Below, one piece after another: positions 3,741 through 62,964 of a stretch of 64,000 bases of DNA (position 1 is the stretch's first letter; each line of letters begins with the position of its first letter). The position numbers and the translations under genes are program-made. Origin of the DNA: Oopsacas minuta (taxonomy: Eukaryota; Animalia; Porifera); the NCBI GenBank assembly GCA_024704765.1, contig JAKMXF010000328.1, positions 62,001-126,000 of the forward strand, read 5' to 3'. The notes beneath the pieces were generated by a model, which saw only the letters and a list, made by a program, of their open reading frames with translations, had not been told where the DNA came from and made no database searches.

Positions 3741-6700
3741 CACAGTGTGCCAAAATTGCCATAATGGCGTATTAGGGTAACCATTACAACTAGACATGTT
3801 TTATATGGTCTATATAGTAACTCGACACCGTAAATTTCAAAAATTTCATTTAAATTTTCCGTAGTATTACCACTATTGGGAATATGACGTCATTTCGGTG
3901 ATTTCATTATTTGTAACATTCATGGTTCAATAATATTATTTGTAATTTCTATTATTGAATTAATGGTATAAAGTCAAGCTTCCTATTAGAAAGATTATAG
4001 CATATATAATAAGCTATTATATAATAATGAACCAGGGGTGTAGTTTTTCCCTTTACTACATATTGAGGGGATTATACCTTGTGGAAAAACTGTTACTAAA
4101 TATATAAACTCAATCTCTAATATTCTTTAATTAATTATTATTCTCCAACACTATGCTATTATATAAGATATCTTGGGGGCTATTTGGGTCATTTGCACTA
4201 GAATTCCTCGTTTTGGTGGATGTAAAACGATTCTGCACTAATAGGGGATCACTACAACACAGAAGGCGAACTAGAATATCTCGTACATTGTCAGAGAATG
4301 ATGTTTTTCTGGCAAGATTTTCCCGATACCGCCTCACGAACTTATTACAAGCTTCTAAACATTCTTCTGATAGATTCTGTAATCCCCTGCCATTATTATA
4401 TTCTCCAATAATCTTGAAAGAATGGGAAAGTAGCTTGTGTAAAGAGGGGGGGTGACGTTCGCCCATGGAAACTGAACTAAGATGTATTCATACGTTTCTT
4501 TACACAATTCTTCCATTTTGCTACAATTAATTAAGTTACCGCTGTTCACAAGTCGTAACACCACAGATAGATTAGTCTGGATCTTCTCTAATAAGAGTTT
4601 ATCAGATGGATTAATCGAGGAAGTCGCCCATTTTTAAAAGTCTCGCTTATCCAAAAAGCAATCACGTACGATGTCCCCAGTAGTTGATGTAGCGCCCTGA
4701 CTTGAAGGAATATCCACACTGAAACTACACTTCTCTAGAAGAATTGCTCGAATCCGCCTCATAGATGCATTTACTTTGTCATTAGATGGTGACCATACCT
4801 TGTGACCCGCATCAAGATGGTATATTAATAACATATACCACCGGAATACACATAGGTAGGCATGGAAAGGGGATGCAGCAATTATATTGATGTCAGATGT
4901 GGGTTTGTGAGTTATGCCCAAGCGTTGTTTGGATGGGAGTTTGAGGAAGTGATCCTCATTAACATCATCAAAGAGTTGCCAGGCATCGCTAATTAACCTG
5001 TTTATGGGGAATCCAGAACGAACCCAGTCAATGCTTTTGATTTCTTCGTCAGATGCAGTACATAGATGACGAGAAGCTCCTCCAGCACCATCTAACAGTC
5101 CAGCCATTTTTGGTGTCAAAGAGAGAACGGACAATATCAACTTGTACATGTCCTCCTGTTAGGAATAATCCGTTCACCAATATTCGGTCGGTTTGGGGAT
5201 TGACAATTTTATCCATGATAAAATGAACATTATTATAATCCTCTTTCAATGCCATCAACGCAACCGGTCTGAAACAAAAGGGGGAGTTAGGAGAATGGTT
5301 GTAGAAGACATCGTTTCCAAGTGTATCTGCTATTGATAATATTTTGAATCCAAATAAGATGAAACATTTAGTACTAAAGACAGGGTTATTATTTTGTTGG
5401 TTATAGGTGCGATGAGACCCGGAACCATCTAATCCATCTGATATCTTAACTGTGAGTGGATATTGTGAAATAGAAATTGGCACTAAGGTTGAAATCAAGC
5501 GTTCGACTGTAAGCTTTAGTATCGAATGATAGGAGATACAAGTTCCAATTGAGAAACCTTCAGGATCATGGACTATCTCAATCTCATCAATCAAAGTTAT
5601 TTCTCTACGATATCTGGAGACAAGCTCATAGGATGGTAATTTTACTTGACATTTGAGGACTTTTTTTTAATTTTTATATTTGCTCGCTCCAATCTCTAAA
5701 CAGTCCAACAGAAAGGCAGATTTATCGATTGGCGCTTTGTGCAAGATTCCATTAAAAGAACCCTTGTTGATGATCTCCTTACACACTTGTGAAGTATCTC
5801 GATCGTAAGAATTGTTAGATATTAATCCTAAAGCCAGAGCAGCTAGTTGTTTAGGCTCGACATTTTCTCTTTCAGCTAAGAAATGAATATGGTCTAAAAG
5901 AATGCTCAGTCTAGAAGGGAAGTTTGAAGATTGCAATCAAGTAAATGCTTTCTGGAATCATGGACAATTTCTTCAGAGAAATTTCGACTTTCAGAAATAG
6001 AAACTTTACGAAAAGGTTCTAATCCAGGATCGAGTGAAATTCTCTTCTTTCTCGGAATGGAAATAGATAGAGGTGCAGTATATGAATGGAAGGTCAAATT
6101 CTCCCAGGTCTCAAGATCACTCTTCTTCCGGTAATACTCTCTGGATGATTTAAGGGACTTGAACTTATATAGAATAGTATCATGTTCTTCCTGTGAAATA
6201 TTATTATCATCAATAAGATACTGCGTAGTGGCTTTAGGGCTTTTCCCCATTGAAATATAGCTAACATATGCTTCTTTGTTGATTACAACAGAGGCCATTA
6301 CTTCACTAGGAGCTATTATTAGACAGAAAAAGATCAAAATTATTTCGTGCATCATCTAAATTTGCATGAGGGCAAGAATATATAGAATTTACTTGAATTT
6401 CAAAAAAATCCTAAAAATACACTTTTCCGATTTTTTGTCTGGTCCAAGCATTGATGTACTCAAAAATATATTCGTGCACCCCGGTGCACGTCTGAAAATT
6501 GGTGTATAATTTCAAAAAAGTAAGCACTATAAGCGATTAACAATAAATTATCGTCCTCTTTTGTCACCTGATAGATGCAGCACTCCAAACACTATATTAA
6601 AACTAAAATATTTCACTCCAGGCCTTTAAAACTAGACAGCCAACAAAATTTTTTGGAAACAATGATACTTGTAATAATTGCATAAACTGATCTAATATAA

Positions 6701-6970
6701 GAAATACGTCAAATTGATGATTAACTACAAACGTTATACAGTATATATTTGGAAGAAAATCGTTGCTAAGGTAGTTAGGTATTTACTCTTGAGGTTAGCT
6801 ATTCAAAATAATCTAAAATATGCTTACTTTAGCTCGCTGTAATCGAAATTCCTATGGGTCATACATACAGTCGTCAATATTTTCCTACTAATTCGACGAT
6901 GGAGATTCATAAAAACGTAGTTAAATTCGTAATTGAAATTTTGCCTAATACGCCATATCGGCACACTGTG
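3741..6970 (-). mobile_element. RAG1-like (Transib/RAG1L-type) transposon A, complete, 3230 bp
   Basis: CACAGTG at 3741 and CACTGTG at 6964-6970; 5-bp TSD AAATA (3736-3740, 6971-6975); bipartite TIRs sharing ATGGCGTATTAGG; empty site visible in the sister foldback arm (3149-3153). Confidence 0.93.
4131..6298 (-). pseudogene. RAG1-core-like DDE transposase, frameshifted (element A)
   Basis: ORF pieces 5906-6355, 5667-5936, 5049-5594, 4634-5149, 4355-4564, 4131-4466 join into a RAG1-like core: RKHLLD (NBD-like), DGLDGSGSH (D600-like), LFDTK (D708-like), HKLLSH, SEECLEACNKFVRRYR (E962-like), SDP. Confidence 0.88.
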
Positions 6971-7626
6971 AAATACTACAATACTTAGCGTGTATTCTGC
7001 CATATTAAAAAATACATAAATTGTAGGGATATAATCACTCTATAATATGAATCAATTGATCGAGTATATATTTAGATACAATAATTGACCATAAATTCCA
7101 TGCTAGATAAATGGTAACTAAGTTAAGAGCAAGAGCTAAGGAAAGTTGGTAAATTTCTTTGTTGTAATCTATTAATGAATTTGGATATAGATACAGAATT
7201 ATACTAAGTTTGGTGAGTATATAGCTATTTTTTGTAAGAATTATGCATTCTCAAATCTTCGGAACAAAAGGGGGGTGGGTAATATTATTAGGGTATGAGA
7301 ATATGCAAAAAGTATCTTGATAACTTGAGTATCCTTGGACATAGAAATTAGCCTGATACACCATTCGATAGCAAATATGCGACTTACTATTTACAAGTAA
7401 TATATCTAAAGGGGTAAACTCAAAGGAATTAGAAAATTCGGACAATTTAAGTTCAATTTTGCGAAAGTGCCACAACAAAAATATATAACCGCAAAGGTCA
7501 ACTCGAAATATTTTCAAATATATGTTTCGCATTTCCTAGCAAAGAGTAAAGGCAACTTTCCCTCAAATAGAAGTTTAACAAACGATGTGTACTTTTCTCG
7601 ATCCGACCTAATGTATAGATCATTTC

Positions 7627-8303
7627 CAGGGGCGTCGCAGGGTGTTAATTCATGGGGGGGTAGAATTATGATAATGCTTGAGTAATAACACTCTAATTAG
7701 TGGTCTAGATAGCCTAAATTAGAGCTTTGTCAATCTCACAAACTTCCTTTCACGGTACTCAGCATTAATGAACGTTCTTGTCATCTTCATGCTGTCTATC
7801 TCAGCAGATATCTCTTTTTCGATTGCCAGTATCGATAGTTATGTCAATCTTGATTGAGTCATAGTGGATTTAAGCCATGTTTTAAGTTGGCGAAGTACGC
7901 TAAAGCTTCGTTCTGCACTGGCTCCGTAGACTCCCACCACCAGCAAAACGGTTACTAACCGTGTAACATCAGGCTGGATGTGTGAGATTTCTGTTGAATA
8001 TACTTCACAACTGGCAACAACATTATAATATAAAAATAACTATAAACAAACTATGAAGGGGGAGATACTATCCTCAAGGGGATCACACCCCCATCGTAGT
8101 TGGGTTATAATTATTTTCAAACAAGTATCGAGAATGCCGAACCGGGGTACACGATTGTACAGTATAACCCTCCTAAATTGGCAGAATGTTCTAATAAACT
8201 CGAAAATAATTTAATACTCACTCACAATCATAGGGGGATTATTCCCCTCTGTCTAAATCATGGGGGGATGAGAACCCCATTCCCACCACTAGCAACGCCC
8301 CTG
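7627..8303 (-). mobile_element. Internally deleted hAT element
   Basis: TIR CAGGGGCGT(C/T)GC; 8-bp TSD ATCATTTC (7619-7626, 8304-8311); minus strand carries a hATC dimerization remnant ASAERSFSVLRQLKTWLKSTMTQSRL. Confidence 0.85.
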
Positions 8304-8499
8304 ATCATTTCATACATTGACCTTGAGATGATGCAATTTAACGTTCTACAATGCATCAAAGGATGGCATTTCCCAAATAAAATAATAAAAGTTTACAAGA
8401 CATATATTTTGGCAGATTTCTGAAGTATTGTAGCATATTATTCAAAGCATCCAAAAAGTTCCCATCGTTGTCAAATATCTTGACACTACAGCTACTTAC

Positions 8500-9560
8500 T
8501 AATCAAAATTTCGAATTATAATGTTCGAAATACTCGCCCTATATCTATGCATAGTTGTAGCCTTCAACCCACTTCGAAAATGCTTTATATACTCGTCTCA
8601 GTCCACTGAATTGAGATAGTGGTAAACCCCGTTTCCTAGCTCTTGTCGGGTATGAAATAGCCGTCCGCCGAGATGTTTTTGCAGCTCAGGAAATAACCAG
8701 AAATAACAAGGTGTGAATCTGAGGAATAAGGAGGATGTTCCAACGTTTCTAATTCGATATCTTCAATGATTACCCTAACGTATGTTGAAACATGAGGTCT
8801 GGAATTATCATGGAGAAATTTGATTCCTCGAGTTTCTGTAGGCGAACGTCGTGTTCTATAGACTTACTCGAATTCTCTCAGGCATTAATCTTCGGAAAAT
8901 GCTCCATTGAATCGTTCTCCTTTAGGCATAGGGCATTTGAACGACTGGTCCATACGCATCAAAAAATATGCTGTAGAGAACCCTATCGTCTCCGAAGTCT
9001 GGACGTGCCTTTTGGGGGGGAAAAAACTTTTGAAGCCACGATTTGCTTTTTTCCTTACGTAGAGCTTCAGAAATTTTAATCCAAGTTTCGTTAACATTAA
9101 AAATTTCATATAATCTTCAAGAATCACACTCTTTATATTATTTAAGCAATTTTTCTAGTTTTGCCCCTTTTTGAGGTTTTTGTATCCATCGCGCTGAAAT
9201 CTTTCGATCCTCGAGAAACTGTGTAGAATTGTATGAACACTTTCTGATGAGATGTCCAAGATTAGGGCAATCTCTTCAAGCTCAAATGGGGGTCAATATC
9301 CAATAGTTCCAGAAATTGAGAGGCAATTTCATGGGATGGTAGCGGAAATTGGTCTTCCTTTCGGAGGGTCATCTTCAATGCTACCCCTACCAGCCTTAAA
9401 TTTACGTGCCCATTCCTTTACAGTAGGATACGCTAGAGCTTCCCCATGCTAAACGGTGACGAGATCCTCATGTATCTGGTGTGGTTTGTTGCCGAGTACG
9501 GTGCGAATCTTTATGTAAGCTCGTTGTTAGGTCTTGCTTGGTATGTGTTTTAAAGCCATG
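8500..9560 (-). pseudogene. mariner-type transposase remnant
   Basis: Manual translation: RAYIKIRTVLG...YPTVKEWARKFKAGRGSIEDDPPKGRP (HTH), DETW, FWLFPELQKHLGGRLF; many stops; TIRs not resolved; ends approximate. Confidence 0.7.
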
Positions 9561-10399
9561 AAAAGTTGACTCTCGAAAATAGGCAAAATTGAAAGAAGGA
9601 TAGATTCAGATATATAATAGCTGGAGTGAATTGTTCAACAGAATTAATTAGGAAATCGAAAGGACTATAGGGTATAATATGCATTTCACATAACCGGGTA
9701 GATTTTGGCTGCTATAAACTAAGGATGCACACTTTTTGAATGCCCAAGTATGTTTGATAACTTGCTGTTCTACAAATATGCCATACATGTATTCGAGCCA
9801 AAACGCATAGATTTTGTAATATAACAGTCACCTTTTGTATATTACTCGGCCTGGCAATACATCCCTGGTCAATATTCCTGAACATGTGTCATGGCTTTAT
9901 GTTACCCAGGTTATGCTACATTGTATTTGATGATGTTTCCAAATAATTGTGTATGTAATAAACATCTTAGCTTGAGATCGCCTGAGGGCACAATTTGGCC
10001 GGGGCCGTTGCTCGGGCCCCGGTCGATACCTAGTTCCTCAAGTACAACCTAGATGTTGGATTTCGCTCATTCAAATTACTACAACCACCCCCTGACGTAG
10101 TTCTTCCTATCAATATGTCGAGGAAATTGATGATGATAGTAGATGGATTATAGAGATATGTATATATTTTAGATTTAGTATCTCGCATATGCATTTATTG
10201 TTCCAAACCTACGATGTTTTGCTTTTGAAATCACTCTTAGCATAAATTTCATTAAACACTGGCACTGGCCAAGGACAGGGTTCTCAACTTTTGTCGGGCT
10301 GAGGCCCCTATTGATCCCTAATCTCAGCCAACAATCATGCATAATGCCTCAAGCTCATATAAAGTATAACTCAGATAAAAATTGTTTTTAATTACAGCT

Positions 10400-11330
10400 T
10401 TTATTCTGTTTGGCAAAGCTCCAACCGCGGCACGTAAGACCTCTTGGGGAATTTTCTGTCATTTTGCTAGCAAAGATCTCTTCAAAGGCTCAATAGTTTG
10501 TGAGATTAACTACAGGATTTGTTTCGAGAATGGACCATACAAAATAAACCATGGGGTTTAGATCTGGTCTGTAAGGAGGCTACTGTTCTTTACTGATAAA
10601 CCCCGGGATATTGCTGTGAAGCCAATATTGAGTGGCATTTGAGGTATGGGCAGGGCTCCATCTTGTTGGAAGACGAACGAACTTCGATTGAACACTGTGT
10701 GCCCTAGATACTTCACAACCAGTTCTAAAATCAACTCTCGGTATGTAGAAACATTGATTTTAACTCCATTGGGGACAAAAACCAGAGGTGTACCCCAACA
10801 AGCGGATATTCCAGCCCAAGCGATCACTGACAGAGGTTTGTGCATCCGAGGGACATATCTGAGCATTTCTTTATTCCTACATGTAGTGGATGATATTATC
10901 CTGTCATTTTGACTATTAGAAACCTCGTGGATTGTGAACATTTTCTCATCTGAAAACAGGATATTTTCCAGACCACAAGTAGCGTGTCGACCAAGCTCCC
11001 CTTTACATATCAGTAATCTCTTCTCTTTAACCTGTTCGCTAAGGTAATGAACATACTTTCTCTCGTAACATCGCAACCCTAAGGGGTGAGTAAGGTCTAG
11101 AGACTTGCGATAAGTTCTAGTTGATCGATCTCTGAAATTTTAAGAGGATTTTGGAACATTGTCTAGTATCCAATTATGCAATAATATTAAATAACTAAAT
11201 ATTGGAATAATTCTTGAAATTCTAAACTGGTAAACTTTCAAAATATATTAACAAAAGTTGAGCAAAGATACTTCTGTAATGGATACAGATATTTGTTTGA
11301 AATTGCCTAGTAAGAAAAGTAAGTTAATTA
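10400..11330 (-). pseudogene. Tc1/mariner (maT-like) transposase remnant
   Basis: ORF 10558-11076 with ILFSDEKMF, NSQNDR, FQQDG; similar to the element at 51908-53221; no TIRs found; ends approximate. Confidence 0.7.
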
Positions 11331-11871
11331 GAATTTCGATTTTAGCAAGGAGCAGCCATTTTCATCACTCTACCTAGTCTATCAATTTTCTCCGGATAAA
11401 ACATTCTGAAATTTCAATAATTCTAAAGTTTCATCATATATTGCATATCCTTTCAACTTATTTTTCTCAAGTGTGTGAGTTCTCCCCCAAACCGTTGAGC
11501 ATTTGAATATCCCATATATATTGACGAAATTACCCTATATTGGTCTATAAATAATCTACTTCTGAGATAACATCCCCCAAAGGCAGAAAATACTTCAAAC
11601 ATTGATTATATGGTAATTAATATTAATAATAATAAAATAATTAACAACTAACAACTATGATAATGAATATATGAACACAATACAAAGATATATAATGAGA
11701 GGTAATTATGATGAATTTATAGTAGTAAACATAGAACAAGGACCTATCTAAATACGAGTAGATTGTGAACAAGTAATAGAAGTAAATTAGAATTAGTTAG
11801 CTCAGGAGAAATTGAATAATAGTAATGAGGCGTCAATAGTGTTTTAGAGAAAATATCAATAAAATAAATTC

Positions 11872-12075
11872 AAAAAATACAAAATTGCAACCTGTGCCAA
11901 CAGCTTAGTCTATTAAATTCAATTTGTTTAAAAAGCGGGACTATTATTGGAGGCACTATGAAAGGTTAGGTTTAATCCCAATGCTCATAGTGCCTCCAGT
12001 TGATAATGCCACTTATTAAACAAATTGAATTTAATAGACTATGCTGTCGGCAAGGGTTACAATTTTGTATTTTTT
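11872..12075. repeat. ~200-bp hairpin MITE with nested inverted repeats
   Basis: aaaaatacaaaattgcaacctgtgccaacagcttagtctattaaattcaatttgttt mirrored at the right end; inner IR ggaggcactatga / tcatagtgcctcc; half copy at ~15598-15668. Confidence 0.75.
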
Positions 12076-12378
12076 CCTCGCTCCGCTCGGATCTAAAATC
12101 CACCAAACAATATATTTACAAATGAATATGATCATCCAACCTATATAATGTTCAATTTCTTTGCAGTAATTATCAGTTGACTAAATAATATTAATAGAAG
12201 GGAATACTGGAGATTTCATCGGTACAAATTCAAAAGAATCAAATTCTCAATCAACGTATTGAATTACCCCCTTTGCTGTATACAACAATCTTCTACGATT
12301 ATTCAAAGGTTATATAATCAGGCAAATACATGTCTTGTAAAGTATACATGGTAAATTTGAAAAACATTATGATCATAA

Positions 12379-12840
12379 AGGGGCGCATGCATTAGTCCAA
12401 ATTCGTATGTAAGCATTAGCCCAAATTACATATGTTTGCGCTAGTCCAAATATCAAAATCGGCATTATTCAAATTTTTGGTGATAGAATAAATGCATTCA
12501 TGGGAAAATTTCGTCGGGAGGAAATATAACAATGTACTTTTGTTGTTTTGAATCGAAATACTCTAAGCAACTCACAGCCGCTCCAGATACAACGATAATC
12601 CAATCAAAGAGCACACCACCTAACCTAATAGTCTACTGAAATGCTCATATTCTCAGCTCAAACCAATCTAGCTAGATAATTAATTCAAATTCAATTCTAG
12701 CCCCTTCCAACATGAGTTCTAAATACTCTCAGCAACTGACAGCCTGCTCCAAAACCAACTCACGCTAACATCACAAAAATTAGGACTAATGCCGATTTTG
12801 ATATTTGGACTAAAGAAAATATACGAATTTGGACGCCCCT
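12379..12840. mobile_element. MITE, possibly PIF/Harbinger- or Zator-like
   Basis: Termini AGGGGCG / CGCCCCT; subterminal IR blocks gtccaaattcgtat and tagtccaaatatcaaaatcggcatta; imperfect 3-bp TSD taa/tca. Confidence 0.55.
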
Positions 12841-13032
12841 TCATTAATACTATCGAAATAATTAAAGCTACCGGTAAATTTAGATGCCCAATGAATGCAT
12901 ATTGTATACAACACTAAAAGTATCTATTGTTTAACCAATAAATATTTAACATCTAAGAGCAATAGAATTATACTGATGACATTGTGATATACAATGAATA
13001 TTTTTCATTTACTTTCAGCAATAAAACTATAA

Positions 13033-15349
13033 CACTGCCCTGCGTCAAATTTGCTGATTATTATCCATGGGTTGTTTTTAGTTAACTTGAGTATGCTGAT
13101 TCTCAATCTGTCATCAGAATTCCCCTATCACGTCTCGTTTTTACTCAAATGTCATTTTAATGTAAGTCGATTTTTTTAAGAACACTTCCCTAGAATAAAT
13201 GATTATATTTGATACATGTGTGAATTTTTGTCTTTTGAAATAAACAGATGCGTGCTTTATTGCATTTTAATTTTTGTCCCTTTAACTCCATTCTTTTCTA
13301 CATAATTTTTTTATTTTTATTTTTGTTATATACAGCTTTATTGTACTATAGTCTACTATTTTGATATTTTATTATCATATGGCTTATCGGAGAAGGTGCA
13401 GTAATGATCCAGACGTCTTTTGTTATATTTGTGGGAGTTTTATGACTTCTAAACAAACTACGGCAATAACAGGATTTGTTAAAAAAGCATATTTAGATAT
13501 TTTGGAATGAGATTAGGTGATCAAGACAAAACATGGGCTCCACATACAGTGTGCCGATCTTGTGTAGAAAATTTGAGACAATGGACAAAAGGAATCAGAA
13601 AGAGTTTAAGTTTTGGAATTCCAATGATATGGAGAGAGCCACAAAATCACATTAGCGATTGTTACTTTTGTATGGCGAATATTTCCGGATTCAATGCTAA
13701 AACCAAGTCATTGATCAAGTATCCAAATTTACATTCAGCAATACGACCCGTTCCCCATTCTATTGATGTACCTGTTCCAAAATTTACTAATTTGGATGTT
13801 ATCTCGGAAATTGATGATTGTGAAACTAGAGATTCATTAATTAGAGAAGATGAGGATTTTATTCCGTGTGTATTATCTCGTTCTAATTCTCCACAGTTAT
13901 TTAATCAGTCTGAATTAAATGATTTGGTACGTGATTTAGATTTACCTAAAGAATCTGCGGAGTTGTTAGGTTCTAGGCTAAAAGAAAAAAACTTGCTTCT
14001 CCCAGAAACAAAATTTTACTCATATAGGAACAGAGAGATCGAATTTTTGAAATATTTCATAATGGAAGACGGATTTGTGTTTTGTCATGATGTTTCACCG
14101 CTAGTTAATGCTCTTGGATGTCCGTATGTACCTAATGATTGGAGACTCTTTATTGATAGTTCAAAACAAAGTTTGAAATGTGTTCTACTTCATAATGGCA
14201 ACAAATTTAGTTCCATACCAATTGGACATTCAGTAAGTTTAAAGGAACGATATGATAACATGAAAATTGTGCTTCATAAAATTAATTATCACCAGCACAA
14301 TTGGGTAATCTGTGGTGACTTAAAGATCATATGCATTCTTTTGGGACAGCAATCAGGATATACAAAATACCCTTGTTTTTTATGCTTATGGGACAGTCGT
14401 GCAAAGAGCGAACACTATTCTAGACAGAGCTGGCCAGCTAGAACCAATCTTAATGTTGGAGATAAGACCATTATTCACGAGCCTCTAGTGGATCCTCTCA
14501 AGATTTTGCTTCCACCACTTCATATAAAATTAGGATTGATGAAACAGTTTGTAAGGGCATTAGATAAAGAAGGAAATTGTTTCAAATATATTACCGAGAA
14601 ATTTTACTACCTAAGTGATGAAAAAAGAAAAGCCGGTATATTCGACGGTCCTCAGATAAGACAACTTGTTCGAGATGATAATTTTTCAAATTCTATGATA
14701 TGCAAAGAAAAATGTACATGGAATGCATTTGTAGATGTCATGAAAAACTTCTTGGGAAATACGAAATCTCCTAATTATAAAATACTTGTGAATGAGTTGA
14801 TTGAATCTTACAAGAATCTCGGCTGCAATATGAGTGTAAAAGTTCACTTTCTTCACAGTCATATTGACTATTTTCCAGAGAATCTTGGAGCTGTTTCCGA
14901 GGAGCAAGGTGAACGATTCCACCAAGACATAAAAACAATGGAAACACGATATCAGGGGAGGTGGGACGTTCATATGATGGCTGATTACTGCTGGTGCCTC
15001 AAGAGAGATTGTATTGATGTTATTCATGCTAGAATGTCAAAAAACGGAAATTTACTCCTGATTCAGACTAATATATTCAAATTATTTATTAACTAAGATT
15101 ATATTATCAATAAAAATTTTATTGTAATTCTTAGTAAAAATTTATAAATGGCAGATTTTCACTATTTTACTTGTAGAGGTATCATGCATTCATCGATAAA
15201 TACACCAATATTTAAAAATAATTTTGCAAAAAAACTAGACGTGATACGTATATTTTACAAAATTATTTAAAATCAGTATTAAAATGTGGATTAGAAAATG
15301 TTTTGCAATAACAATCAGCAAATAAAATTTTTTTTTCCGCAGGGCTGTG
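13033..15349 (+). mobile_element. Chapaev3-type DNA transposon, copy 2, complete
   Basis: CAC...GTG termini (cactgccctgcg / cgcagggctgtg) with inner tttgctgatt / aatcagcaaa; 3-bp TSD TAA (13030-13032, 15350-15352). Confidence 0.88.
13379..15096 (+). pseudogene. Chapaev3 transposase with a 1-bp deletion near 13497 (and probably one near the C-terminus)
   Basis: 529-aa ORF 13507-15096 (GDQDKTWAPH, WREPxxHxxDCYFC, LFIDSSK, CGDLK, HFLHSH, SEEQGERFHQD, MMADYCW); upstream MAYRRRCSNDPDVFCYICG is out of frame here but in frame in copy 1. Confidence 0.85.
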
Positions 15350-15666
15350 TAACCAATATAAAAATTCGTCAAGAGTACAATTTGTTTCTCTTTTGAAAGG
15401 TGAAAAATTTGGCATTTTTCCTTTCATAATTTTTTGCTAGAGGCCAGACAAAGTTTGACCAGTGTGAAATAGTGGCACTTAGTGTCCGATTGATTAGCAA
15501 AGGGGAGGAGGCACACCCGACAAATATCTCCAATAATTCTCACACAGTTTATCACCTTAATTCTATCCAGTTTTGCTGCAGCCCTTTTACGGAGAAAAAA
15601 TATATAATTACAACCTGTGCCGATAGCTTAGTCAATTAACCTCAATTTATTTTTAAAGTGGCACTA

Positions 15667-17412
15667 TTAATTGGTATCTCGATTTATTCCACCAGAAACT
15701 TCTTCCAAGGTAATAATCAACGAATCATAAGTGTGGCAAATCGCATTAACAGAAGCTTGCCTGCAGGTCCATCTTGTATCTGATAGCTTTGGTAGCTGAC
15801 GTACTTGCTTCTCTGGGTGAAGCTCCTTTTGCATTGACACGAAGATCATATGTGCTTAGAGGAAGAAATGAATACATAGAGAGCCTCAAGCAATAAGAAA
15901 AAATCACAAGCAAATTGAATCTTCTTTGCGCAGTCAACGAGAACTAAGTTTAGTTTGTGTGCATAGCAATGGATGTACATTGCATAGGGATATATTTCTT
16001 TCATTCGCTGCTGCACACCGTGACAGTTTCCACTCATGACAGCAGCTCCATCATATCCTTGAGATACGATGCAAGCACGATCCAACCCATGTTTATTGAG
16101 AGTGGATATGAGGTAAGTTGTCAAACTCTCAGCAGTTAGATTAGTTCAGTCCACGAAAGTAAGGAATCTCTCATGAATGTTTGCTTTGTCGTCAACGTAC
16201 CTAACAATAATAGCCAGTTGCTCCTTGTTGCTTTCATCTTTTGATTCGTCTGCAAGCAGCAAAAAGGAAATCGCTTTCCGTACACTATCACAAATTTTTA
16301 TTCTAAGCATGTCACCCATGATATTTAATAACAAATTCTGAACTTCTGGTGAACGATAAGTTGCATTTTGTGGGCCATGTTCGAATCTATGTTGGATAAT
16401 TGGGTCATGGTTGCCAATAACTTGCAGTACCTCAAAAAAGTTTCCTTTGTTCAGTGAATTTTCGGATTCATCATGTCTTCGGAAGGCAATTTCAAGGCTA
16501 CTACACAAGAGTATAACTTCGGCGATACTCTTAATATAATGTCAATTTAGGCGGATCTGCTCACTTCTTGACGAATCAATGCGACTCTCAATTGATGTAC
16601 CAATCCTTTCATTTTGTTTATATTCATGCCATGAAACCATCGCGTTGATGTGTGTAAGGCATTTATCATGACAGTGGAGGGTACCATCTCTTCCTGTTGC
16701 ATGCTTCCAGTCTCTAAATCCTACACTTTTAAACGCATCTTCAGTTCTACCACTTACAGTATTAAAAATGGGGCATGGGTAGCAGAAACCAGCGTCTCTT
16801 TCTACTGAGTATTCCAACCAACTAAAAGTGACAAACCAATCTGGATTGAATTGTCTTTTCTTAGTTCCCACTAATGTTGAAGGAAATCGACAAGTATGTC
16901 GATTGGGCTGAACCGGCTTATTATTAGGCCCTTAAGCAATATCTAAAGGTGGCTGAAGATTGACATTGGGAATTTCAGGAGAAATTGATAATTGCGTTGG
17001 TGCCATACTGGGTAGTGTTGTTTCCTCAATTGGATCAGAACTGACAAGATTAGTAGTATCACATGTAGGCACGAAGTCAGGCTCTTGTGCTTCCTGAGAA
17101 TGAGAAGGTAAATATTATCATAAGTAATATCAATATCATCTTCAGAAGTTAGCTTTATTCTCTTGTAAGTGGCAAACAAAGTTAGCTGCGAGCTGTTGGT
17201 AATGTTAAATTTTCGAGACATATATGCTAATTACTAAATATAATAAATCGTAGAATAGTAAATTAGGTAAAAAAGTAAAAGGAATTGATATATGTAATAT
17301 AACAATTAATAGGGATGAACTGATGTGAGTGTACAGACATAATATTTATTGCCTGGGCACAGAGAAGTTGGCCGGGCACAGGCCAGCAGGCCCGTGCTTA
17401 GCTACGCCACTG
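15667..17412 (-). mobile_element. hAT transposon (ZMYM1/TTF-zinc-finger, DUF4371 type), 3'-truncated and frameshifted
   Basis: 5' terminus CAGTGGCGTAGC ends at 17412; ORF pieces FNPDWFVTFSWLEYSVERDAGFCYPC, AFRRHDES..NKGNF, LADESKD, QGYDGAAVMSG, HCYAHKLNL, SDTRW. Confidence 0.85.
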
Positions 17413-17731
17413 AATTACCTCAAGATTTCTAATTATGTCCCGAAAATAAGTATAAATCAAAAATATCATTCAGGAATACACCTTCATTAGCTTATTCTCT
17501 TGAAAGTAAATCCCCTTGCACTTTCTGACAAATTCTTCTTTCTGTAGCGATCACTCTTGATTTCTGGTGGGATAATATTCGTCTGGAGGTATCCACGAAT
17601 TGCTTCATACTCTGTCGCATCCAAATGAAAAATGTCAAAGTAGATATAAGTGTTGATGTTGAAATCTAGAAATAAAGTAAAATGTTAGTGCATGCATTTA
17701 GGATGACACACATGTATAAATACGAATACTA

Positions 17732-19073
17732 CAGGGTGTTAAGAAATTGATGCCCTAATTATATTTGAGTAACAGTTTGAAATCAGCGGTATAGAATGTG
17801 GTGATCACTTTCCAATATAACCGCCTTTACGTTTTATACATTCTTTAACTCTATTACACATCCCTAATACTAAATTCTCCAAAATTTCTGGAGATATCCT
17901 CGACCAAGCCAGCTTTACATGATTTTCCAGCATCAAAACGTTGGTTGGAATAAGCATCATTTGAATATCATGTTAGACTATTGACCACAAATTTTCAATG
18001 GGATTGAGGTCCGAGAGTTACCTGGCCAAGTTTTCTTTGTCCAAAATTCGACTAAATTGTTATCACACCATTCTTGCGTTCTTTTGGCAGTGTGGGCTGG
18101 AGCACCATCCTGTTGAAAGATGGCTCGTGACATGTCTGGCAACATCTTGCGACGTAAAATACTCGCTTCTTCTGGTTGACGCTGCATAGTAGACATCAAT
18201 GACTTATTCAATATCTCTTACATAATAATCCGCGTTAACAGTTTGACCTTTGGGGATGATATGGAGTTCTGATACTGCACGATATGACATCATACCCCAA
18301 ACGAGGATTTTTGAGGGGAATTTCACGGTTTCAGTTGGTAAAATTTGAGACTGTTTGTAAGCCCAGACACGATCATTCTGATGGTTAAGTGAGGATATAA
18401 TTCGAAGGGAGACTCATCTGAGCACAGTACCCGGTGCCACTCTTCATTTTTCTAGGATTTCCGATCTTTACAAAATTGGAGGCGAGCCATCCGCTGTTTT
18501 TCAGTGATTTTTGGCTGTTTTTGAGGTTTAAAGGGCTTGACAGAGAGTGTACTTCTTAAATATGTATGTACTGTTACATGAGACACTGGGCATCTCTTGG
18601 AGTGTAAGCGCTTAGCCAATCTCCGCGTTGATTGGTGTCTTTTGCAAATCGATTTTGCAATGACGATTTTAGCAATTTTTGTGATTGTGGATTTGCGTCT
18701 ACGTCCAGGCTTGTTTTCGAGGGAGCGACCTGACTTATTGCGGCTCAACCAATGTCGACTTGTTCGAATTTTTATTCCTAAGCTCTGTGAAACCCGTATC
18801 TGAGTCATTCCACTCAATACCATTCCTACTGCCCTGCTTCTTGTGGCGGAAGTAGCTTCTTTGACAATTAGTATACGCTATAATTCGTACAATCGGGTTT
18901 GATAATATACAAAATAGAAATTGGCATTCTGACTGAGAGTGATATACTAAAATTGTCTAAAACTGGTTGTCAAATTGAAATAAGAGTGGGTGTATTTCAT
19001 AAGATTGAACACTGAAACTATGGTTACATTATTGTAGATTAAGTGATTAGGGCATCAATTTCTTAACACCCTG
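17732..19073 (-). mobile_element. Tc1-like element (DD37E), complete ends, frameshifted transposase
   Basis: 28-bp TIR CAGGGTGTTAAGAAATTGATGCCCTAAT, TA TSD; QQDGAPAH...SPDLNPIE with 37 residues counted between D and E. Confidence 0.92.
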
Positions 19074-19079
19074 TATGTG

Positions 19080-20830
19080 ACTAGGGATGAAATGTTGATA
19101 TTCCTTGATTTGCAATTGCTACTTTCGGGTCAAAATCCTATGCAACAGTGCTTCCGATACGATGAAAGGAAATTGCTCTCTAACTATTTATATGGAACTC
19201 ACACCTTTCCCTTATTGAAACTTCATGTTTCTAACCCGATAGGAGTCCAGTTCTTTGGAACAGTAACATCTTTCGAGTAACGAGCTCTAGAGTTTGCTCT
19301 TTTATCTTTTCCAACTGTTGGATCATCAAATTCCATCCAGAGAATACAGGGAACACTTTTCATGTGTATTACTCCTTGTTCCATATTCTATTCTCGTAAG
19401 ATAAAAGTAGCTCCATTCAGAAGACCGTCTGCAGTGTCGTTATTAATCGTCATAAGGTATCTAGCAGATATCATCAGGTAGTCCTTGAGTGCCTGATGCT
19501 TCAAACCTTGAATAGTGGTCCTCATTTGGTCATAAATGTCTAGCATTATCACCTACTAAAGATTCAATAGCTATAAACTTACAACCCTCAGTAATTAATT
19601 TATTCAGTACAGTCTCGTTATGAACATTAACACTAGCGTTAGCACTGAATAAAAGTATAGCTTTAGGAGGAAGATCAATGAAAAATTGTTTTCAATTTGT
19701 CTACTTTTAAACAGATTAGTACCATCCTCCGTTAATGGACAGTTAGCAAAATTGTTCAATGCAATTGCAAATTTTTGATCTTCTTTTGTCTCATTATCTC
19801 AGTTAGTTCTACAAAAGGAAACTTTTCGCAAAGATAAGGCCCAACTAATCCATCATAATTCTCACGAGTAGTATTTGATACTTGAAAAACTTAGGTATCT
19901 TTTACTGGATGAAGTTGATGGAAATCTCCTACACAGAATATGGATACTCCACAAAGTCAAGTGAGTTATCCATAATCGCTTTGAGTCGGCTATTAACTTG
20001 AGATAGAATTTTACTACCAACCATGGATATCTTGTCAATAATCATAACTTTCAATGGACTTTGTTTACTTCTTAAAGTGTTGCATACATCAGAAGATAAG
20101 TTGGGAGCGGGGCCGTTTAATTCAGTTACTTGTAAAGCAAATGCACAATGTAGTGTCATATCATGGATATTATGTGTAGCTTTACCAGTAGGAGCTGTTA
20201 ATAAAACCTTAACAGCATCAGGGTTAGTACCTGGTAACGAATCAACGTATCTTACCAAACCTTCGCATAAAGCTCGTATTACGTACTTTTACCTACTCCT
20301 GCACCTCCTCCTATGTAGAGATACATATGAAGTTGCATAATCGTTTTGAAGCAATGTAGTGTATCCAGAAAATTTGCCCATTGAATTGTATTTAAATTCC
20401 TACACATTTGTATAAATTCCTCATCAGTGCTGATATTAGGCCAATTTAAAATCCACCTGGAGGTTTCCAGGAGGATTGCTAGTCGGGTCTACATTCCAGA
20501 TATTAACTCCAGGATTATCAATCAGGTAATCAGTGGCTTCAATCACATCAATACCGTCATTATTCATTATTTCCTCAATAGCAATTCCATCAAAGTTAAT
20601 CTCATCAGAATCTAAATCCTCTAGGATATGTATAGCCTTATCAATTGAGGACTGGTCTCTACTTCAAATAATGACCTGTTTTGTGTAAATAATTCAAGAT
20701 TAGATTCATAAATACTCGTATAATCTAGAGTATCGGAGCCACTCTCTTCTCTTCAAGGTACACAAAACATTAATTGTTCTCTATAGAAGTTATCTCCGTC
20801 CTGTATAACAGTGGTTCTCAAACTGGGGGT
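19080..20830 (-). pseudogene. PIF1-like helicase remnant, probably Helitron RepHel
   Basis: ORF 19929-20258 VLLTAPTGKATHNI..TLH.AF..VMIIDKISMVG; downstream decayed MRQKEDQKFAIALN and GLLNGA; ends approximate. Confidence 0.7.
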
Positions 20831-21499
20831 CGCGGAACGGTTATGGAAATTGATTTACGAAAAACCTTTTTAGAGCGTTAAATGCAACAATCATACTATG
20901 TTGAGAATAGGTATAACTTCAATTGATAGTTTTTAAATAGATTGTATCTTTGCTAATGGGAGAGCTGCATTTGTCCGAATTTTGTAGTATGCATTTATCC
21001 GAATTTTGAAGTATGCATTGCCTGACAGAATTAAGCATTGTTATTCATATGATATTTCGTCGCTAATAATTGATAGGTGACATATACTCAAGGTGTCTTC
21101 AGTATACCAGAAATATGTCGATTCCGTATTTTAACTCACATTGCTTTCAGGATGGACTATTTCTCGTATAATAGATTATTCCTGTTGAGAATTGGGAAAT
21201 GGGATTTTTTCGCATTTTTCCTGAGGGAATTGACTTCCCGTAAAAATGTTGTAAATATCACCCTGATTAAGGAGATTTTCATCACTACAAATCACAGGAT
21301 AGGATTTACTGTTATTAGGTTCTAGTATTCTTGTCGTACAAGTTTTGGCTTTCATTTTCACTTACTACTGAGCCAAAGCTTTTACCTGCTACTAGTTTGT
21401 TCCAATTTCCTTCATTCAGGCCTTACATTAGTCGGACAAATAATACTTCAGTCGACCTGATGTATACTATAAAATTCGGACAATCGCTTGCGTCCCTTT

Positions 21500-22657
21500 C
21501 TAATTATCGATTATTATTTTAGTTATTAATTTGGTATCGTTGAAAAAGAAATTTATGACCAAACGAAAGTGAGGACAATTCGATATCGGAACACAAGCAA
21601 ATTTGTTACCATTATGCAGCAACACGCACTTTAGACTCCGTTTAGACCTGTCGATAAATAAACGCCACTCATTTGGATTGTATTGGGACAGTCCCATCGC
21701 TGAGAGAAGTCCTGGGATGTTATTACAAAACACAAAACCGCCTTCTTCACTGAAATTGCGAATAATTTCTTCGTCTCTGCGTTGGTAATAAGTTATCTTA
21801 GCTTCACTGTGGAGAACATGGTGTTCACTGAGACGGGAAGCCAGGATCTCTGAAGCATCTTTTGACAAGCCTAAGTCTCTCACTAAGTCATTGAACTGCC
21901 CTTGTGTAAAAGGCTCCGCTTTACTTATCTGTAACAACTCATTACAGCTATTGCTGCTGTAAGTGCTGTCCGACGATTCATCAATTGCCTCAGTAAACGC
22001 AGTATCACGTAAGGACTTAAAAACAGGCACCTGAATTTCGCTGCAGTGTGGAATTGGGCGTCTTGCAGAATGTATGTCAGGATAATGCCACGAATTCTTT
22101 TTCTGCCGGTTCCATCCAGACATGTTAACCTTACAGAAGTAGCAGTCATTGTGATGATCCTTGGGCTCTCGCCAAACAATTGGTACCCCAAGCTTCATGG
22201 ATTTGAATTTTCCTTGGGTTCATAGGCAGAGGGTTTCTGCGCAATATTTGCACACTTTGTGAGGGCTCCATGACTTATCCTGATCGCCTAATTTAATACC
22301 AAAGTAAGCCTGATAAGCTATTTTGGGGTCATTTCTAATAGTAAAACGATGTTCCTTTGCCATATTCACCACAAATATAGCAATAGACATCGGGACCATT
22401 GAGGCAACAACGTCTAATGCGTTTTGAATCCATAAAAGTTTCTATGTTGTGAACAAATAGTTGTAATGTTGATATAAACATACAAACAGAAAATATTTGT
22501 AGTAGTACCTTAAAATTTAAGCTTGTGTAATATCTAGAAAACTAGAGCCAATTCAGCAAAATTAATAGTATTTTCGGATACAGCAGCCCCGATATAACCT
22601 AAAAACACTCCAACAATCTGAGCCAAGAGATAGAAATATTTTTGTTGTTGACCTGTG
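21500..22657 (-). mobile_element. Second, divergent Chapaev3-family element, 3'-truncated
   Basis: Candidate 5' terminus CACAGGTCAAC ends at 22657; ATG at 22433, CCLNGPDVYCYICGE, GDQDKSWSPH, WREPKDHHNDCYFC, LFIDRSK; no partner TIR found. Confidence 0.8.
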
Positions 22658-23409
22658 ATATTGATTGACTGTAGATATCAGGTAAACAAATTCAGTAATT
22701 TGTGAAGTAATTGTGACTTGCCAATTTGATTTGTTAAAAAAAGTATGGGAGCGGCGCTCCCACCCGCTCCCACAGCAGGACACCACTGTTCGTACCATAT
22801 CCTAGATGCCAACCTGGCTTCTCTCCATGTCATGAGATTTCTTCTATATATCAAAGGAGATCATATGTTCTTTTTTCATATGACATTCCTCCTTTATTGG
22901 TGCCTGTCCTTGGTTCTCCTGCGTCATATTTTTGTCCTATACTTTCGTTTTAGTCCTTTTAACTGATTAAAGCTCCAAACCGAGACCATCACTTCATAAA
23001 TAGTTTGATTTTCTGAGAATATAAAAGAGAACCGATTTAGCAAGTATATACAGTAGAACTCGGATAAGACATGCCCCCTCGCTGATCAATAATTTGTAGC
23101 TTTTAGCCGAATACTATTCCCATATATGCAAGTAGAGGTACCAGTTTTAAATAGTAATACGTTCTCACAGAGTTCTACTGTATATTATTTGCTGAAATTT
23201 ACTATTGTGAAGTTAGCCTAGAATTGGACCATGTAAACCACAATCACTAATTTTATTCATTTGTACACCTCTGATTTACATGTAATCGGTATCATTCGAT
23301 AGGGGAGCGATGGCCGTTTTAGGGAATATACTTAAAAGATTTCAAAATTTTGATTTTTACTCACTATTTTGTCATAGTAAATATGTATCGAACTTCATTC
23401 GAAATTACG

Positions 23410-26400
23410 CACAGTGGCACGAAATGGTCAGAATGTGGAAATAGGCATTTTGATGGCACATAGGTCCTCAAAATGTATTATTGTCATATAGGTTTTCGAG
23501 CCCAACGAATCGAATGGGATACTCATTTTTTCTCTATCCCTTCAGATGACAAAGTTATGACGTCATTGTCACCTATCTGAGGTGTGAAAATTCCCCAAAT
23601 TTTCTATTAATCGATTGAGAGGTTTACTTTTAATCATCATTATGATCTTCATGATCACGAATAAGGGTGTTCACTAAAATATCTTGGCTACTTCTAAGTC
23701 CTTGGCTAGATGGAGGTCTTGGAATAGAAAACTTGCGATTCATTAACAGCATGGGATCACTGTGAGAAATCAATCGAACAAATACATCCTTTAAATTTTC
23801 TTCAAATGAAAACTTGCGAGCAAGACGATCTCTGTATCTCCGAATATATTTGTTAGAAGCCTCTAGTCCTTCTTCAGATAAGTTCTCTAGCCCATGTCCA
23901 TCATTAAACGTTGAGATGATTTCCGGTGCATGTGCTAACAGTTTGTGTAACGTTGGGGAAACATTAGCCCAAGGAAATGCACAGAGAATTGACTGGTAGA
24001 TATTACTGCAAACAAGCGCTAGTTCTTCTGTATCCACTCTTCTGCTGCTATTATAGACGCGTAGGATTGCTCCTAGGCATGTGTGAATTTCAATTATGTG
24101 GGACTTGAACTCAGACGGGATCACTGTCAAAACCCAGTAGAGGAAATCTTGATCATTGTCATCCTTTCTTATCAAGCATCGTCTTACCACATTACCAGTA
24201 GTCGTTGTGTCACCTTGTGTTGAAGGGATGTCAATAATAATATTGAGATTGTCTTTAATTAAACTTGTAACGAAAGTTTTAGCATCTGAGACTCTCTTAG
24301 AAGTTGGTGACCACTTAAATACTCCTGCGTGCAAATGGCTAATTAGATGTAAAAACCAGCCAAAACATCGGAGATATGCATGCAAAGGCGAACTAGGTAT
24401 GATTTCTAAGTCAGATATTGGTCTGTGTGTAACGTTGAATCTGTTGTCAGAAGATAATGATAGAAACTCCTCTTCGTTAACTTCATCAAATAATACTTTG
24501 AGGTCTGTGATGGATCGATTAATTGGAAAACCGTCTTTTACGATATCCGGATCATGGATTTGTTTGAATGTCGCTGTGCAGAACTGGCAACATGCACCGC
24601 CAGCTCCACTAATAATCTTAGCCATTTTGCCACCCAATTGTGAACGTTGAATTTCAACTTCACAAAATCCGCTTGTTAGTTCTAAACCCTTTTCCGTTAT
24701 CTCTGTGGACTCCTTATTGATTAGTGTATCCATAAGATATCGAATATTGTCTTCGTTCTCCTGTAGAGCTAGTATCGCAACGGGTCTAATTGAGAAAGGA
24801 GAATTTGGTAGAGGGTTTTTCCAAATCAGTTTGTTATCGGTGTCGGATATGGAAATCACCTTAAACCCGAATAAAATAAAACTTTTTGTTGAAATATTGG
24901 GGTGAGTCGCTTGCTGATAAACCCGGTGAGAGCCAGAACCGTCAAGTCCATCTGAAATTCGTATCCTCTTAGGATTGCTGGCGCTGGGAATTGCATTGGC
25001 AGAAGCAGTCAATATTCTGTTTACTGTATGAGTCAGAAGCTTTTTGTAAGATACAAGCAATGCCTACTCGATGTTCTCGATCAACTGAAAAGATGTCATT
25101 AGTCAAGCAAATTTGAGATCGATGGGTAGCTAATCGATTGTAACCTGGAAGCTGGACATCTGAAAGCAATAAACGTCTTAAATCGATGTATTTCTTCTTT
25201 CCAATTTCTAAAGAATCCATCAAGAACGCAGCTTTATCGTAGGTTAGTTTATTGCAGACTGGACCGAAGCTTCCCTTAGCAATAATTTCTTTACAGAACT
25301 TGGTAGTAGTAAAGTCGCATTCAGTCTGTGAACATAGCATCATCAGGTAACAGGATAGTTCTTGACTGGAAACATTCTCTTGTACAGCAACTTTTTCAAG
25401 ATGTGTTAGTAAGGAGGACAATCGGCTGCGAAGACCTTTAGTTGATAATTCCCTCAGAGGCTTACGGGTGGGCTTACTAAAATCTTCTTCGAAAACAGAG
25501 GTTGATTGGCTAGAAGAAACACTCCCTATCACCATGACTTCATCTGAGCATTGATAACCTGTACTCAATCTCGGGTGTTTAAGTGGTGTATGAAAAGGTA
25601 TCGCATTCCAAGTAGTTATATCGGCTCGTTTCAGGTATTCTCTCCTATCTTCTCTGAGGGTCGAAAATTTTCTCCGAACTGTATCATGCTCTGTTTCTTC
25701 CAAATTATTGAGGACAATAAACGAGGACGCGAGAGAAGTGATTGTTTTGTTCTTTTGTGCAGTTAAGAACGTGTATGCATCTTCGTTATTCATAATGAAA
25801 AATGTGCTAATAAACAACCACAACAATTATTTATGATTTATATGGGCCAAAAATTAGATAATTGTGAATGGATTATATTTAAAATCGCAAAAAAAAATAT
25901 CGTTGACACTTCCTGACACCATAATTTAAAGTGTATTTTGTAGAGGACGAAAAGAGCTATTAGGAAAGTGCAATGGAAAGTTCCGCAAGTGAAGGCAAAA
26001 AAAGTACTAGAGTTTTAATGAAACGTGTTTCTATTTATTGCACTTGTACGAACAAGCTTGTTTAAAATGAGAATAGTAAATTCCATCTGTTCATTGGAGC
26101 CAAGATTAACGTGATTTATTATTCAGCAACATAAGATCTTTCGATTGGTATACTATAAATAGCAGTTATTTGACGTGGAGAATCCAAATTATTCAAAATT
26201 ACATCATGACCGAAAATTGAAACCATAAATCAATCTTTCGAATTTCAATTATGCTCTCATTGGAATAGACGTAGGAGTTAAATGGAAAGTCTATTGTAGA
26301 GATGTCAAATGTTTTCCGAGGTTTGTGGGGGTGCTGAATTCAAATATCAACACTATAAAGCAATTTGAGGTTATATTTTTTTCACCTATTTCCACATGCC

Positions 26401-26411
26401 GTGCCACTGTG
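23410..26411 (-). mobile_element. RAG1-like (Transib/RAG1L-type) transposon B, complete, 3002 bp
   Basis: CACAGTG at 23410 and CACTGTG at 26405-26411; 5-bp TSD TTACG (23405-23409, 26412-26416); bipartite TIRs sharing ATGTGGAAATAGG. Confidence 0.95.
23630..25793 (-). pseudogene. RAG1-core-like DDE transposase (element B), ~721 aa if one 2-bp deletion is repaired
   Basis: ORFs 24969-25826 and 23630-25060; RKPLRELSTKGLRSRL (NBD-like), DGLDGSGSH, CQFC, HKLLAH, SEEGLEASNKYIRRYRDRLARK match RAG1 core motifs CDGMGD, CTLC, HKTLAH, SEGNESGNKLFRRFR. Confidence 0.92.
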
Positions 26412-62520: not shown

Positions 62521-62964
62521 AGTTTGAGGTGTAATTAGACCAAGGTAATATGTGTCCAGACACATTATGTAACGTCAAAATTATCTGAACCATGGAGGAA
62601 ATATTCAAAGTGAAATGCTTAGCTCTTATCATAATTGTGAAGAGTATATTCTGGACCAATAATAGGTTAAAACTTTGAGCTGTCATTCTCATGAGTATCT
62701 TTTGATAGCGAGAATTATATGCCTATGTATAAATATATAATAGAGGTGAATAATGAATTCAATTATAGCTATCCACTAAGAATGACATTTGATTAAAAAG
62801 TAATAGGAAATTTTTCAAGAAAATTATGATTCCCAGGTTTCAGACTATGCTGAATTTAATGATAAATTTTCGAAAGCTTATGGGATGATGAAAAGTTGCC
62901 CTAAAGCCTATGTTGAAACCACTGTGTGGTGTTTGTTATCTATTTATCCCTATTTTTTATTTAG

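Follow-up and report, generated by a model that had tools for sequence, protein, structure and literature searches.

Single-gene Transib transposons of the glass sponge Oopsacas minuta with short 5' and long 3' ends and a homologue of the RAG1 nonamer-binding domain

Elements A and B, two transposons that lie in a 64,000-nucleotide stretch of the genome of the glass sponge Oopsacas minuta (contig JAKMXF010000328.1, positions 62,001 to 126,000 of the forward strand; hereafter the window), are decayed copies of two single-gene Transib families. Each element has a short end 5' and a long end 3' of its transposase, with the same inner sequence box set further from the tip at the long end, and comparison with eight further families indicates that this layout is conserved. 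The transposases carry, in addition to a RAG1-like core, a homologue of the RAG1 nonamer-binding domain (NBD), which makes the NBD a plausible reader of the inner box.

It is debated whether the 12/23 rule arrived together with RAG2 or had belonged to the RAG1-like transposase before. One study implicates RAG2 (PMC4840297), and two others place asymmetric ends together with an NBD in the ancestor (PMC10629977, PMC9435367). The sponge families provide a compact, RAG2-free natural test system for the origin of the rule, with one gene and a real NBD, sister families with and without a CCHC tail, two sharply defined end types one helical turn apart, young copies and at least one naturally intact reading frame (L005/P0037).

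Elements A and B are Transibs

Searched against the PDB, the long open reading frame (ORF) of B gave HzTransib as its best match (6.7e-22), followed by amphioxus RAG1L and then RAG1, and the transposase matches the Pfam RAG1 family. Pieces of the A and B proteins are 40-50% identical to one another. A database search returned 131 relatives, the closest of which are annotated in O. minuta itself (LOD99 tags, GCA_024704765.1), and 30 full-length relatives were aligned (alignment A1). The A1 profile matched HzTransib at 2.2e-66 and BbRAG1L at 2.5e-40, and the D, D, E catalytic positions are kept across the family in this alignment. The AlphaFold model of P0037, an intact relative, has a pLDDT of 87 and by fold is closest to HzTransib (Z 33, 22-23% identity), then to RAG1 (Z 31-32) and BbRAG1L.

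The elements are 3.0-3.2 kb long and contain one gene of ~2.1 kb, the remaining ORFs being short and antisense to it. Among the ORFs between the termini of A, B and the recovered relatives' loci, there is no RAG2-like gene and no convergent RAG1L/RAG2L pair. Because the elements hold one gene and leave no space for a RAG2-like gene, they are Transib elements and not RAG-like (RAGL) transposons. The four Transib features examined were all found: a RAG1-core-like DDE transposase, a target-site duplication (TSD) of 5 bp, termini that begin with a 5'-CAC heptamer and no RAG2-like gene. The description of A and B in an earlier note on this DNA, made from the letters of the window, as two divergent RAG2-less RAG1-related transposons is thus borne out.

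Termini and boundaries of A and B

In both elements the heptamer CACAGTG is followed by the inner box, a 13-mer, after 7 nt at the short end and 16 nt at the long end, and each element is flanked by a perfect 5-bp TSD (Table 1). The earlier note had given the coordinates and letters of the four ends, and these were recovered letter for letter. The inner 13-mer is identical at the two ends within A and within B, with 9/13 identity between A and B, as that note also reported. The transposase lies on the - strand in both elements, which places the short end on the 5' side of the gene and the long end on its 3' side, again as proposed. Beyond the 7 nt of the heptamer, identity between the short and long tips extends to 11-12 nt in A and B. 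The pattern CACAGTG-N(5-30)-ATGNNGNANTAGG occurs four times in the window and not once in any of 100 dinucleotide-preserving shuffles. A pairing scan of the window for CACNNTG ends with identical 5-bp flanks recovered A and B and nothing else credible.

The boundaries of A are confirmed to the nucleotide by an exact paralogous empty site, in which the reverse complement of the A flanks is joined with a single AAATA (Table 1). This empty site sits in the other arm of an inverted duplication, the arms being 97.7% identical over 869 bp. The inverted duplication (2502-3384 versus 3504-7620) has arms of ~0.87 kb that are 100% identical over 718 nt and a short loop, with A in one arm only.

Depth and flanks of B were taken from the contigs of four public runs of one sample. 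In these contigs, unrelated flanks start exactly at B's 23409/23410 and 26411, and word depth within 23410-26411 is 10-100 times the flank depth. The high depth and the several different flanks at exact termini indicate that B belongs to a multi-copy family with many insertion sites.

State of the copies and recent mobility

Both window copies are dead and their ends are intact. The transposase homology of A is spread over four frame segments. Compared with P0037, an intact relative with which it shares 71-77% identity, it has three frameshifts. A second copy of family A (L012) is 3'-truncated and 94.8% identical, with its 27-nt short end unchanged. B is 98.6-98.8% identical to two other copies of its family, L001 and L002 (~1.2-1.4% of sites differ), and private indels are present in each copy. 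Family A is the older of the two. The B frame is split by a private extra T at ~25055-25056, which is present neither in L001 and L002 nor in the contigs of two public runs. In addition, the second catalytic Asp position of B (RAG1 D708), which is Asp in all relatives, is occupied by a private Gly codon (Table 1), and at position 24633 all of the public-run contig depth has a letter other than that of window B.

The elements have moved recently, as evident from the empty site of A and from the similarity, depth and flanks of the B copies. In one copy of family B (L001:2384-5381) the 7/16 ends are intact and the 5-bp flanks do not match (AGTAC versus CCAAG), which suggests recombination between copies or an adjacent rearrangement.

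The short-5'/long-3' layout in ten families

Eight further families were recovered from the O. minuta genome and three ENA assemblies, with CAC ends and a 5-bp TSD required of their termini, and were compared with A and B (L003, L005, L006, L007, L008, L009, L010 and L021). The offset of each family was taken, reading the gene on the plus strand, as the shift at which a 13-nt stretch of the short end best matched the long end. All ten families have CACAGTG at both ends, a perfect 5-bp TSD and the short end on the 5' side of the transposase. The offset is +9 in seven of the ten, with 10-13 of 13 positions matching (13/13 in A, B and L005, 11-12 in L007, 11 in L021 and 10-11 in L006 and L008). 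It is +10 in two, L009 (8-9 matches) and L010 (an exact 10-mer). The remaining family, L003, is undecidable: the inner box of L003/L004 is weak, with 6/13 matches at +9 and 8/13 at +13, and was counted neither as +9 nor as an exception. Tip identity between the two ends ranges from 9 to 14 nt across the families examined.

The exact 7/16 spacing that the earlier note singled out holds in A and B and is not invariant across the families, in which 8/17, 7/17 and 8/18 spacer pairs also occur. The same note had named variable or symmetric spacers in other copies as observations that would count against it; spacers do vary, and none of the ten families is symmetric, with one undecidable. What is kept is a short 5' end and a 3' end that is 9-10 bp longer, rather than the exact spacer lengths of 7 and 16 nt. 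The families divide into two deep clades with ~27% protein identity, and the asymmetry is present in both. Across this divergence the distance of the inner box from the tip is constant within 1 bp for each end type. The sequence of the box varies among families and agrees between the two ends of each element, the pattern to be expected if a protein-binding site and its transposase evolve together. The claim that the arrangement reflects selection and not chance is supported by these data, as the short-5'/long-3' order is accompanied by an offset of +9 or +10 in nine of ten families and the box changes in step at both ends. The layout is thus under constraint and not an accident.

A metagenome scan with the family profile yielded eight short contigs, none with both ends, and no recognisable termini were found in the 3.4-kb contig of a further locus, L011 (P0102). 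L003, L004, L007-L010 and L021 are on long high-coverage contigs (ENA ERZ25069837, ERZ25071281 and ERZ25066843), and the neighbouring genes (NHL repeat, zf-TRAF) look animal.

Inner box and long-end motif

The sponge ends are built from an outer module, consisting of the heptamer CACAGTG and 4-5 further shared bases, and an inner box of ~9-13 bp, whose first base is position 15 in the 5' end and 24 in the 3' end. Within the box, the last 9 nt, of GGAAATAGG type, form the conserved core. Counted from these 9 nt, the short end reads heptamer-11-nonamer and the long end heptamer-20-nonamer.

The extra segment of the long end has a sequence of its own. In 8/10 families, which include A, B, L005, L006, L009, L010 and L021, it contains an A-tract at positions 12-15 followed by TGGC/GGCC (the A-tract/AAATGG motif), with no counterpart at the short end, and the motif is kept down to ~27% protein identity. 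This conservation among families indicates that the 16-nt 'spacer' is not free sequence and is instead a third conserved box. Placed in the register of the short-end box, the long-end segment matches the box at 47/130 positions, compared to 34.4 +/- 5.0 in shuffles (P about 0.009). The resemblance is mostly generic, with a mean of 4.2 matches in cross-family comparisons versus 4.7 within families. The excess over shuffles hints that the extra 9 bp might be a degenerate second copy of the box left by an old tandem duplication, an idea to which we give little weight.

Candidate readers of the inner box

The sponge proteins are ~700 residues long, with an N-terminus ~180 residues longer than that of the solved HzTransib chains. 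In the full-length P0037 model, residues 105-687 align to RAG1 390-1007, residue 390 being where the NBD begins, whereas the alignment to HzTransib does not begin until model residue 179. A second profile (A2), built from 30 sequences over the part that corresponds to P0037 98-182, matched the RAG1 NBD-DNA crystal structure 3gna at E=1.8e-5, covering RAG1 391-444. When the domain was modelled alone, its top 18 PDB matches were all RAG1 chains, with a TM score of 0.78 to 3gna. As a single sequence, the N-terminal 181 residues gave no match in the PDB; only the 30-sequence profile found the RAG1 NBD. By these matches, a true homologue of the RAG1 NBD is present in the proteins, N-terminal to the core. 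The proposed reader of the 13-mer thus exists, and a role for it in reading the inner box is plausible.

Two other parts of these proteins are candidates for the same role. One is a CCHC knuckle at the C-terminus, known from RAGL as the C-terminal tail (CTT), which is present in most families and in many of the relatives, including P0039, P0041, P0105, P0102 and P0115. No knuckle is found in A, B, P0037, P0010, P0011, P0014, P0015, P0021 or P0029, and the aligned tails show a clean internal deletion. On the tree the knuckle appears to have been lost repeatedly and independently within NBD-bearing sponge-type Transibs, a pattern of loss that Martin et al. (2023; PMC10629977) predicted for redundant DNA-binding modules. 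In the comparison of P0025-P0115 with P0010-P0037, some of the 'absent' knuckle calls may stem from decayed copies. Asymmetric ends persist with and without the knuckle, which argues against it as the box reader; this persistence also fits the redundancy idea of PMC10629977. The other candidate is a small helical domain, confidently predicted at residues 1-71 of P0037 and the equivalent positions of other proteins, which precedes the NBD, with a disordered linker between the two. An atlas search with residues 1-75 gave matches that scored no higher than 0.71 and serve as leads only, and no family or fold was assigned.

Other features of the window

A third Transib-like element, which is non-autonomous, lies near the end of the window (Table 1) and is oriented like A and B. 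It has an 8/17 layout and a box that is 12/13 identical at an offset of +9, and its TSD matches at only 3/5 positions. The spacer in front of the box, RTAGGCTTTAGGG, measures 17 nt in the long end and 8 nt in the short one, and the long end bears a TAAATGGCTA motif. The element has no coding similarity, and no further copy of it was found among the loci examined. Within its limits, at 62466-62520 on the - strand, there is a solo CACAGTG terminus like the long-type end of this family (GGCT..ATGGC...TTTAGGGT), which lacks both a partner and a TSD and is perhaps a remnant or a piece of a rearranged copy.

Two other pairs of CACAGTG sequences were considered as Transib termini and rejected. The pair at 55467/60262 is internal to the arms of a longer inverted repeat (55114-55783 versus 59941-60622), whose arms of ~670 nt are 82-93% complementary and enclose ~4.2 kb. 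The pair at 34129/34950 belongs to an inverted repeat (34129-34950) that starts with CACAGTG and is perfect over at least 55 nt, and its flanks continue the palindrome as a longer inverted repeat. This region is the window's only GC-rich stretch (GC 0.50 at 34-36 kb).

Table 1 Positions of the transposons and their parts in the window
Feature	Position	Strand	Remarks
Element A, decayed Transib copy, 3230 bp	3741..6970	-	CACAGTG termini, 5-bp TSD, transposase homology
A long (3') end	3741..3776	+	heptamer 3741-3747, 16 nt, inner box 3764-3776
A short (5') end	6944..6970	-	heptamer 6964-6970, 7 nt, inner box 6944-6956
A TSD, AAATA	3736..3740 (left), 6971-6975 (right)		perfect
Paralogous empty site of A	3114..3189		exact
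Element B, young but dead Transib copy, 3002 bp	23410..26411	-	
B long (3') end	23410..23445	+	heptamer, 16 nt, inner box 23433-23445
B short (5') end	26385..26411	-	heptamer, 7 nt, inner box 26385-26397
B TSD, TTACG	23405..23409 (left), 26412-26416 (right)		perfect
B transposase frame, two pieces	23630..25793	-	Met at 25793; two ORFs, of 285 aa and 476 aa, with an overlap at 24969-25060
Gly codon GGT at second catalytic Asp position of B	24632..24634	-	
NBD-like segment of B protein	25263..25478	-	A2 profile and fold match to RAG1 NBD
Third Transib-like element, non-autonomous, 1767 bp	61160..62926		long end 61160 (+), short end 62926 (-)

A model for end recognition and its alternatives

The explanation that best accounts for these data, and that we regard as likely, is that the sponge elements are Transibs with an NBD and bipartite ends, in which the inner box is displaced by 9-10 bp and synapsis would join two unequal ends. 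The heptamer module would be the site of cleavage, where the 5-bp TSD is made, and a transposase dimer would hold both heptamers in its catalytic core while a hinged NBD dimer would read both inner boxes. The displacement of 9 bp, sometimes 10 bp, corresponds to about one helical turn and has been kept through the deep divergence of the families. With one box a turn further out, the synaptic complex would assemble on a 5' end together with a 3' end, as RAG does on a 12/23 pair. The A-tract/AAATGG motif of the long end may supply a bend or an extra contact. There is precedent for the parts of this model: in RAG, an NBD dimer on a hinge accommodates and enforces the 12/23 rule (PMC10629977), and nick-hairpin cleavage at the heptamer and 5-bp TSDs are described for both HzTransib and RAG (summarised in PMC10629977 and PMC4840297).

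Several observations weigh against this model. In the absence of RAG2, RAG1 loses the 12/23 preference (PMC4840297), and unequal pairing may accordingly not be enforced by an enzyme that lacks RAG2. ProtoRAG prefers 5'/3' pairs over like pairs only moderately (PMC8289069). The offset is not strictly fixed, being 9 in some families and 10 in others, and the sponge NBD has a basic R/K patch opposite the GRPR of RAG1, not the motif itself. The extra segment of the long end is conserved in sequence and may therefore act as a cis element in its own right instead of as a spacer that sets length. Finally, the N-terminal helical domain and, in some families, the CCHC knuckle are alternative readers of the box. 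The behaviour of RAG1 alone and of ProtoRAG, together with a long-end motif that lacks a short-end counterpart, would fit an asymmetry that is real and carries no pairing rule, the additional 9-10 bp being a separate, sequence-specific cis element (an intrinsic bend, a site for a host factor or a further contact of the transposase) and any pair of ends being accepted. We consider this unlikely, as it is opposed by a box-to-tip distance that stays within 1 bp for each end type across ~27% identity and by the presence of a homologue of the NBD, the domain that sets the spacing in RAG.

Somewhat less likely still is that the box is read by the C-terminal CCHC knuckle, as the CTT of BbeRAG1L does for TR2, or by the N-terminal domain. 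The knuckle occurs in many relatives and clamps terminal inverted repeat (TIR) DNA in amphioxus RAGL (PMC10629977, PMC8289069). Yet the knuckle-less A, B and L005 have the best-conserved boxes, at 13/13, and TR2 of ProtoRAG directly adjoins the heptamer and is not at positions 15-27 (PMC8289069). For the N-terminal domain, the model of residues 1-71 predicts a confident helical fold without an assigned function, and a domain search gave nothing informative. The offset might also be a frozen accident, that is, one old event, a duplication or insertion of 9 bp at the 3' end, that all families inherited without function. The resemblance of the same-register long-end segment to the box (47/130) hints at such an event, but this resemblance is mostly generic. 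Moreover, the ends have changed in sequence everywhere outside the heptamer, and still the offset has in no family been lost, grown beyond 9-10 or given way to symmetry. Recognition also places the ends of cut-and-paste elements under direct selection. A frozen accident is therefore highly improbable.

Within the NBD-based model, a further step can be entertained with considerable doubt: that the NBD dimer alone may enforce synapsis of a short with a long end in Transibs that lack RAG2 and, in A and B, the knuckle as well, aided by the bend-prone A-tract of the long end. A rule of the 12/23 type would then belong to the ancestral RAG1-like transposase. Were the NBD to enforce pairing in this way without RAG2, such a rule would be older than the capture of RAG2 and would reach back to the earliest animal lineages.

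Comparison with known Transib, RAG-like and RAG systems

End asymmetry of this kind has already been published for Transib and RAG-like transposons, and the sponge elements reveal no new principle. Kapitonov and Jurka (2005; PMC1131882, section 9) described Transib families with RSS12-like 5' termini and RSS23-like 3' termini (RSS, recombination signal sequence) and drew the 12/23 analogy, and a later hypothesis was built on their report (Yakovenko 2021; PMC8355894). According to Tao (2022; PMC9435367), all Subgroup I Transibs have asymmetric TIRs and Subgroup II contains both kinds. Asymmetric TIRs, the CCGHC tail and the NBD are all found in Transibs (Martin 2023; PMC10629977). The earlier note thus overstated the distinctiveness of the 9-bp asymmetric layout, since the short-5' asymmetry was on record for Transib (PMC1131882, PMC9435367). 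Nor is an offset of 9 or 10 bp unique, as AanRAGL has 4/13 spacers (PMC9435367) and PflRAGL-A a 10-bp asymmetry (PMC10629977). Sponges are not mentioned in PMC1131882, PMC8355894, PMC9435367 (including its supplements) or PMC10629977, nor in the literature searched. What the present elements add is the host phylum, Porifera, and their own spacing variant.

Compared by their ends, not their proteins, the insect Transibs (Transib5 of D. melanogaster; Transib2_AG and TransibN1-N3_AG of A. gambiae; PMC1131882) are also single-gene elements with a CAC heptamer, a 5-bp TSD and bipartite ends, short 5' and long 3' of the transposase. Their offset is ~11 bp (12/23) and their nonamer A-rich, whereas the sponge elements have an offset of 9-10 bp and a G-flanked box of GGAAATAGG type. 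HzTransib of Helicoverpa zea (PDB 6pqn, 6pqx) is the closest solved structure and shares the RAG1-core fold, the lack of RAG2 and the 5-bp TSD. Its TIRs are described as symmetric with little nonamer similarity (PMC8289069, PMC4840297), in contrast to the asymmetric sponge ends, and its solved chains lack the NBD-like segment and the N-terminal domain present in the sponge proteins. The Subgroup I Transibs (PMC9435367) have in common with the sponge elements an asymmetric TIR pair and an NBD-like region, as well as the CCHC tail found in many sponge relatives. The CTT1/CCGHC-type knuckle of Subgroup I is missing from A, B and their closest relatives and present in other families of their clade.

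Among RAGL transposons, AanRAGL of Aureococcus anophagefferens (PMC9435367), which was shown to be mobile, also has two end elements at a 9-bp offset and a 5-bp TSD. It differs from the sponge elements in having a RAG2-like gene and other box sequences. PflRAGL-A of Ptychodera flava (PMC10629977) shares the heptamer and nonamer-like box, an asymmetry of 10 bp, an A-rich start of the spacer and the NBD. By contrast, it has RAG2L, a GRPR/K motif and a CCGHC tail, and the start of its spacer is conserved at both ends and not, as in the sponge, at the long end only.

With the V(D)J RSS and RAG1, the sponge elements share the heptamer CACAGTG, a homologous NBD and two signal types about one helical turn apart. 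Read as heptamer-11-nonamer, the sponge short end is close to a 12RSS, whereas the long end, as heptamer-20-nonamer, does not have the spacing of 23. The sponge box is not ACAAAAACC-like, as the RSS nonamer is, there is no RAG2, and the elements are transposons and not a host recombination system. Two of the marks of a 12/23-like system, namely two signal types with a conserved difference in length (nine of ten families) and an NBD homologue, are both found in the sponge Transibs.

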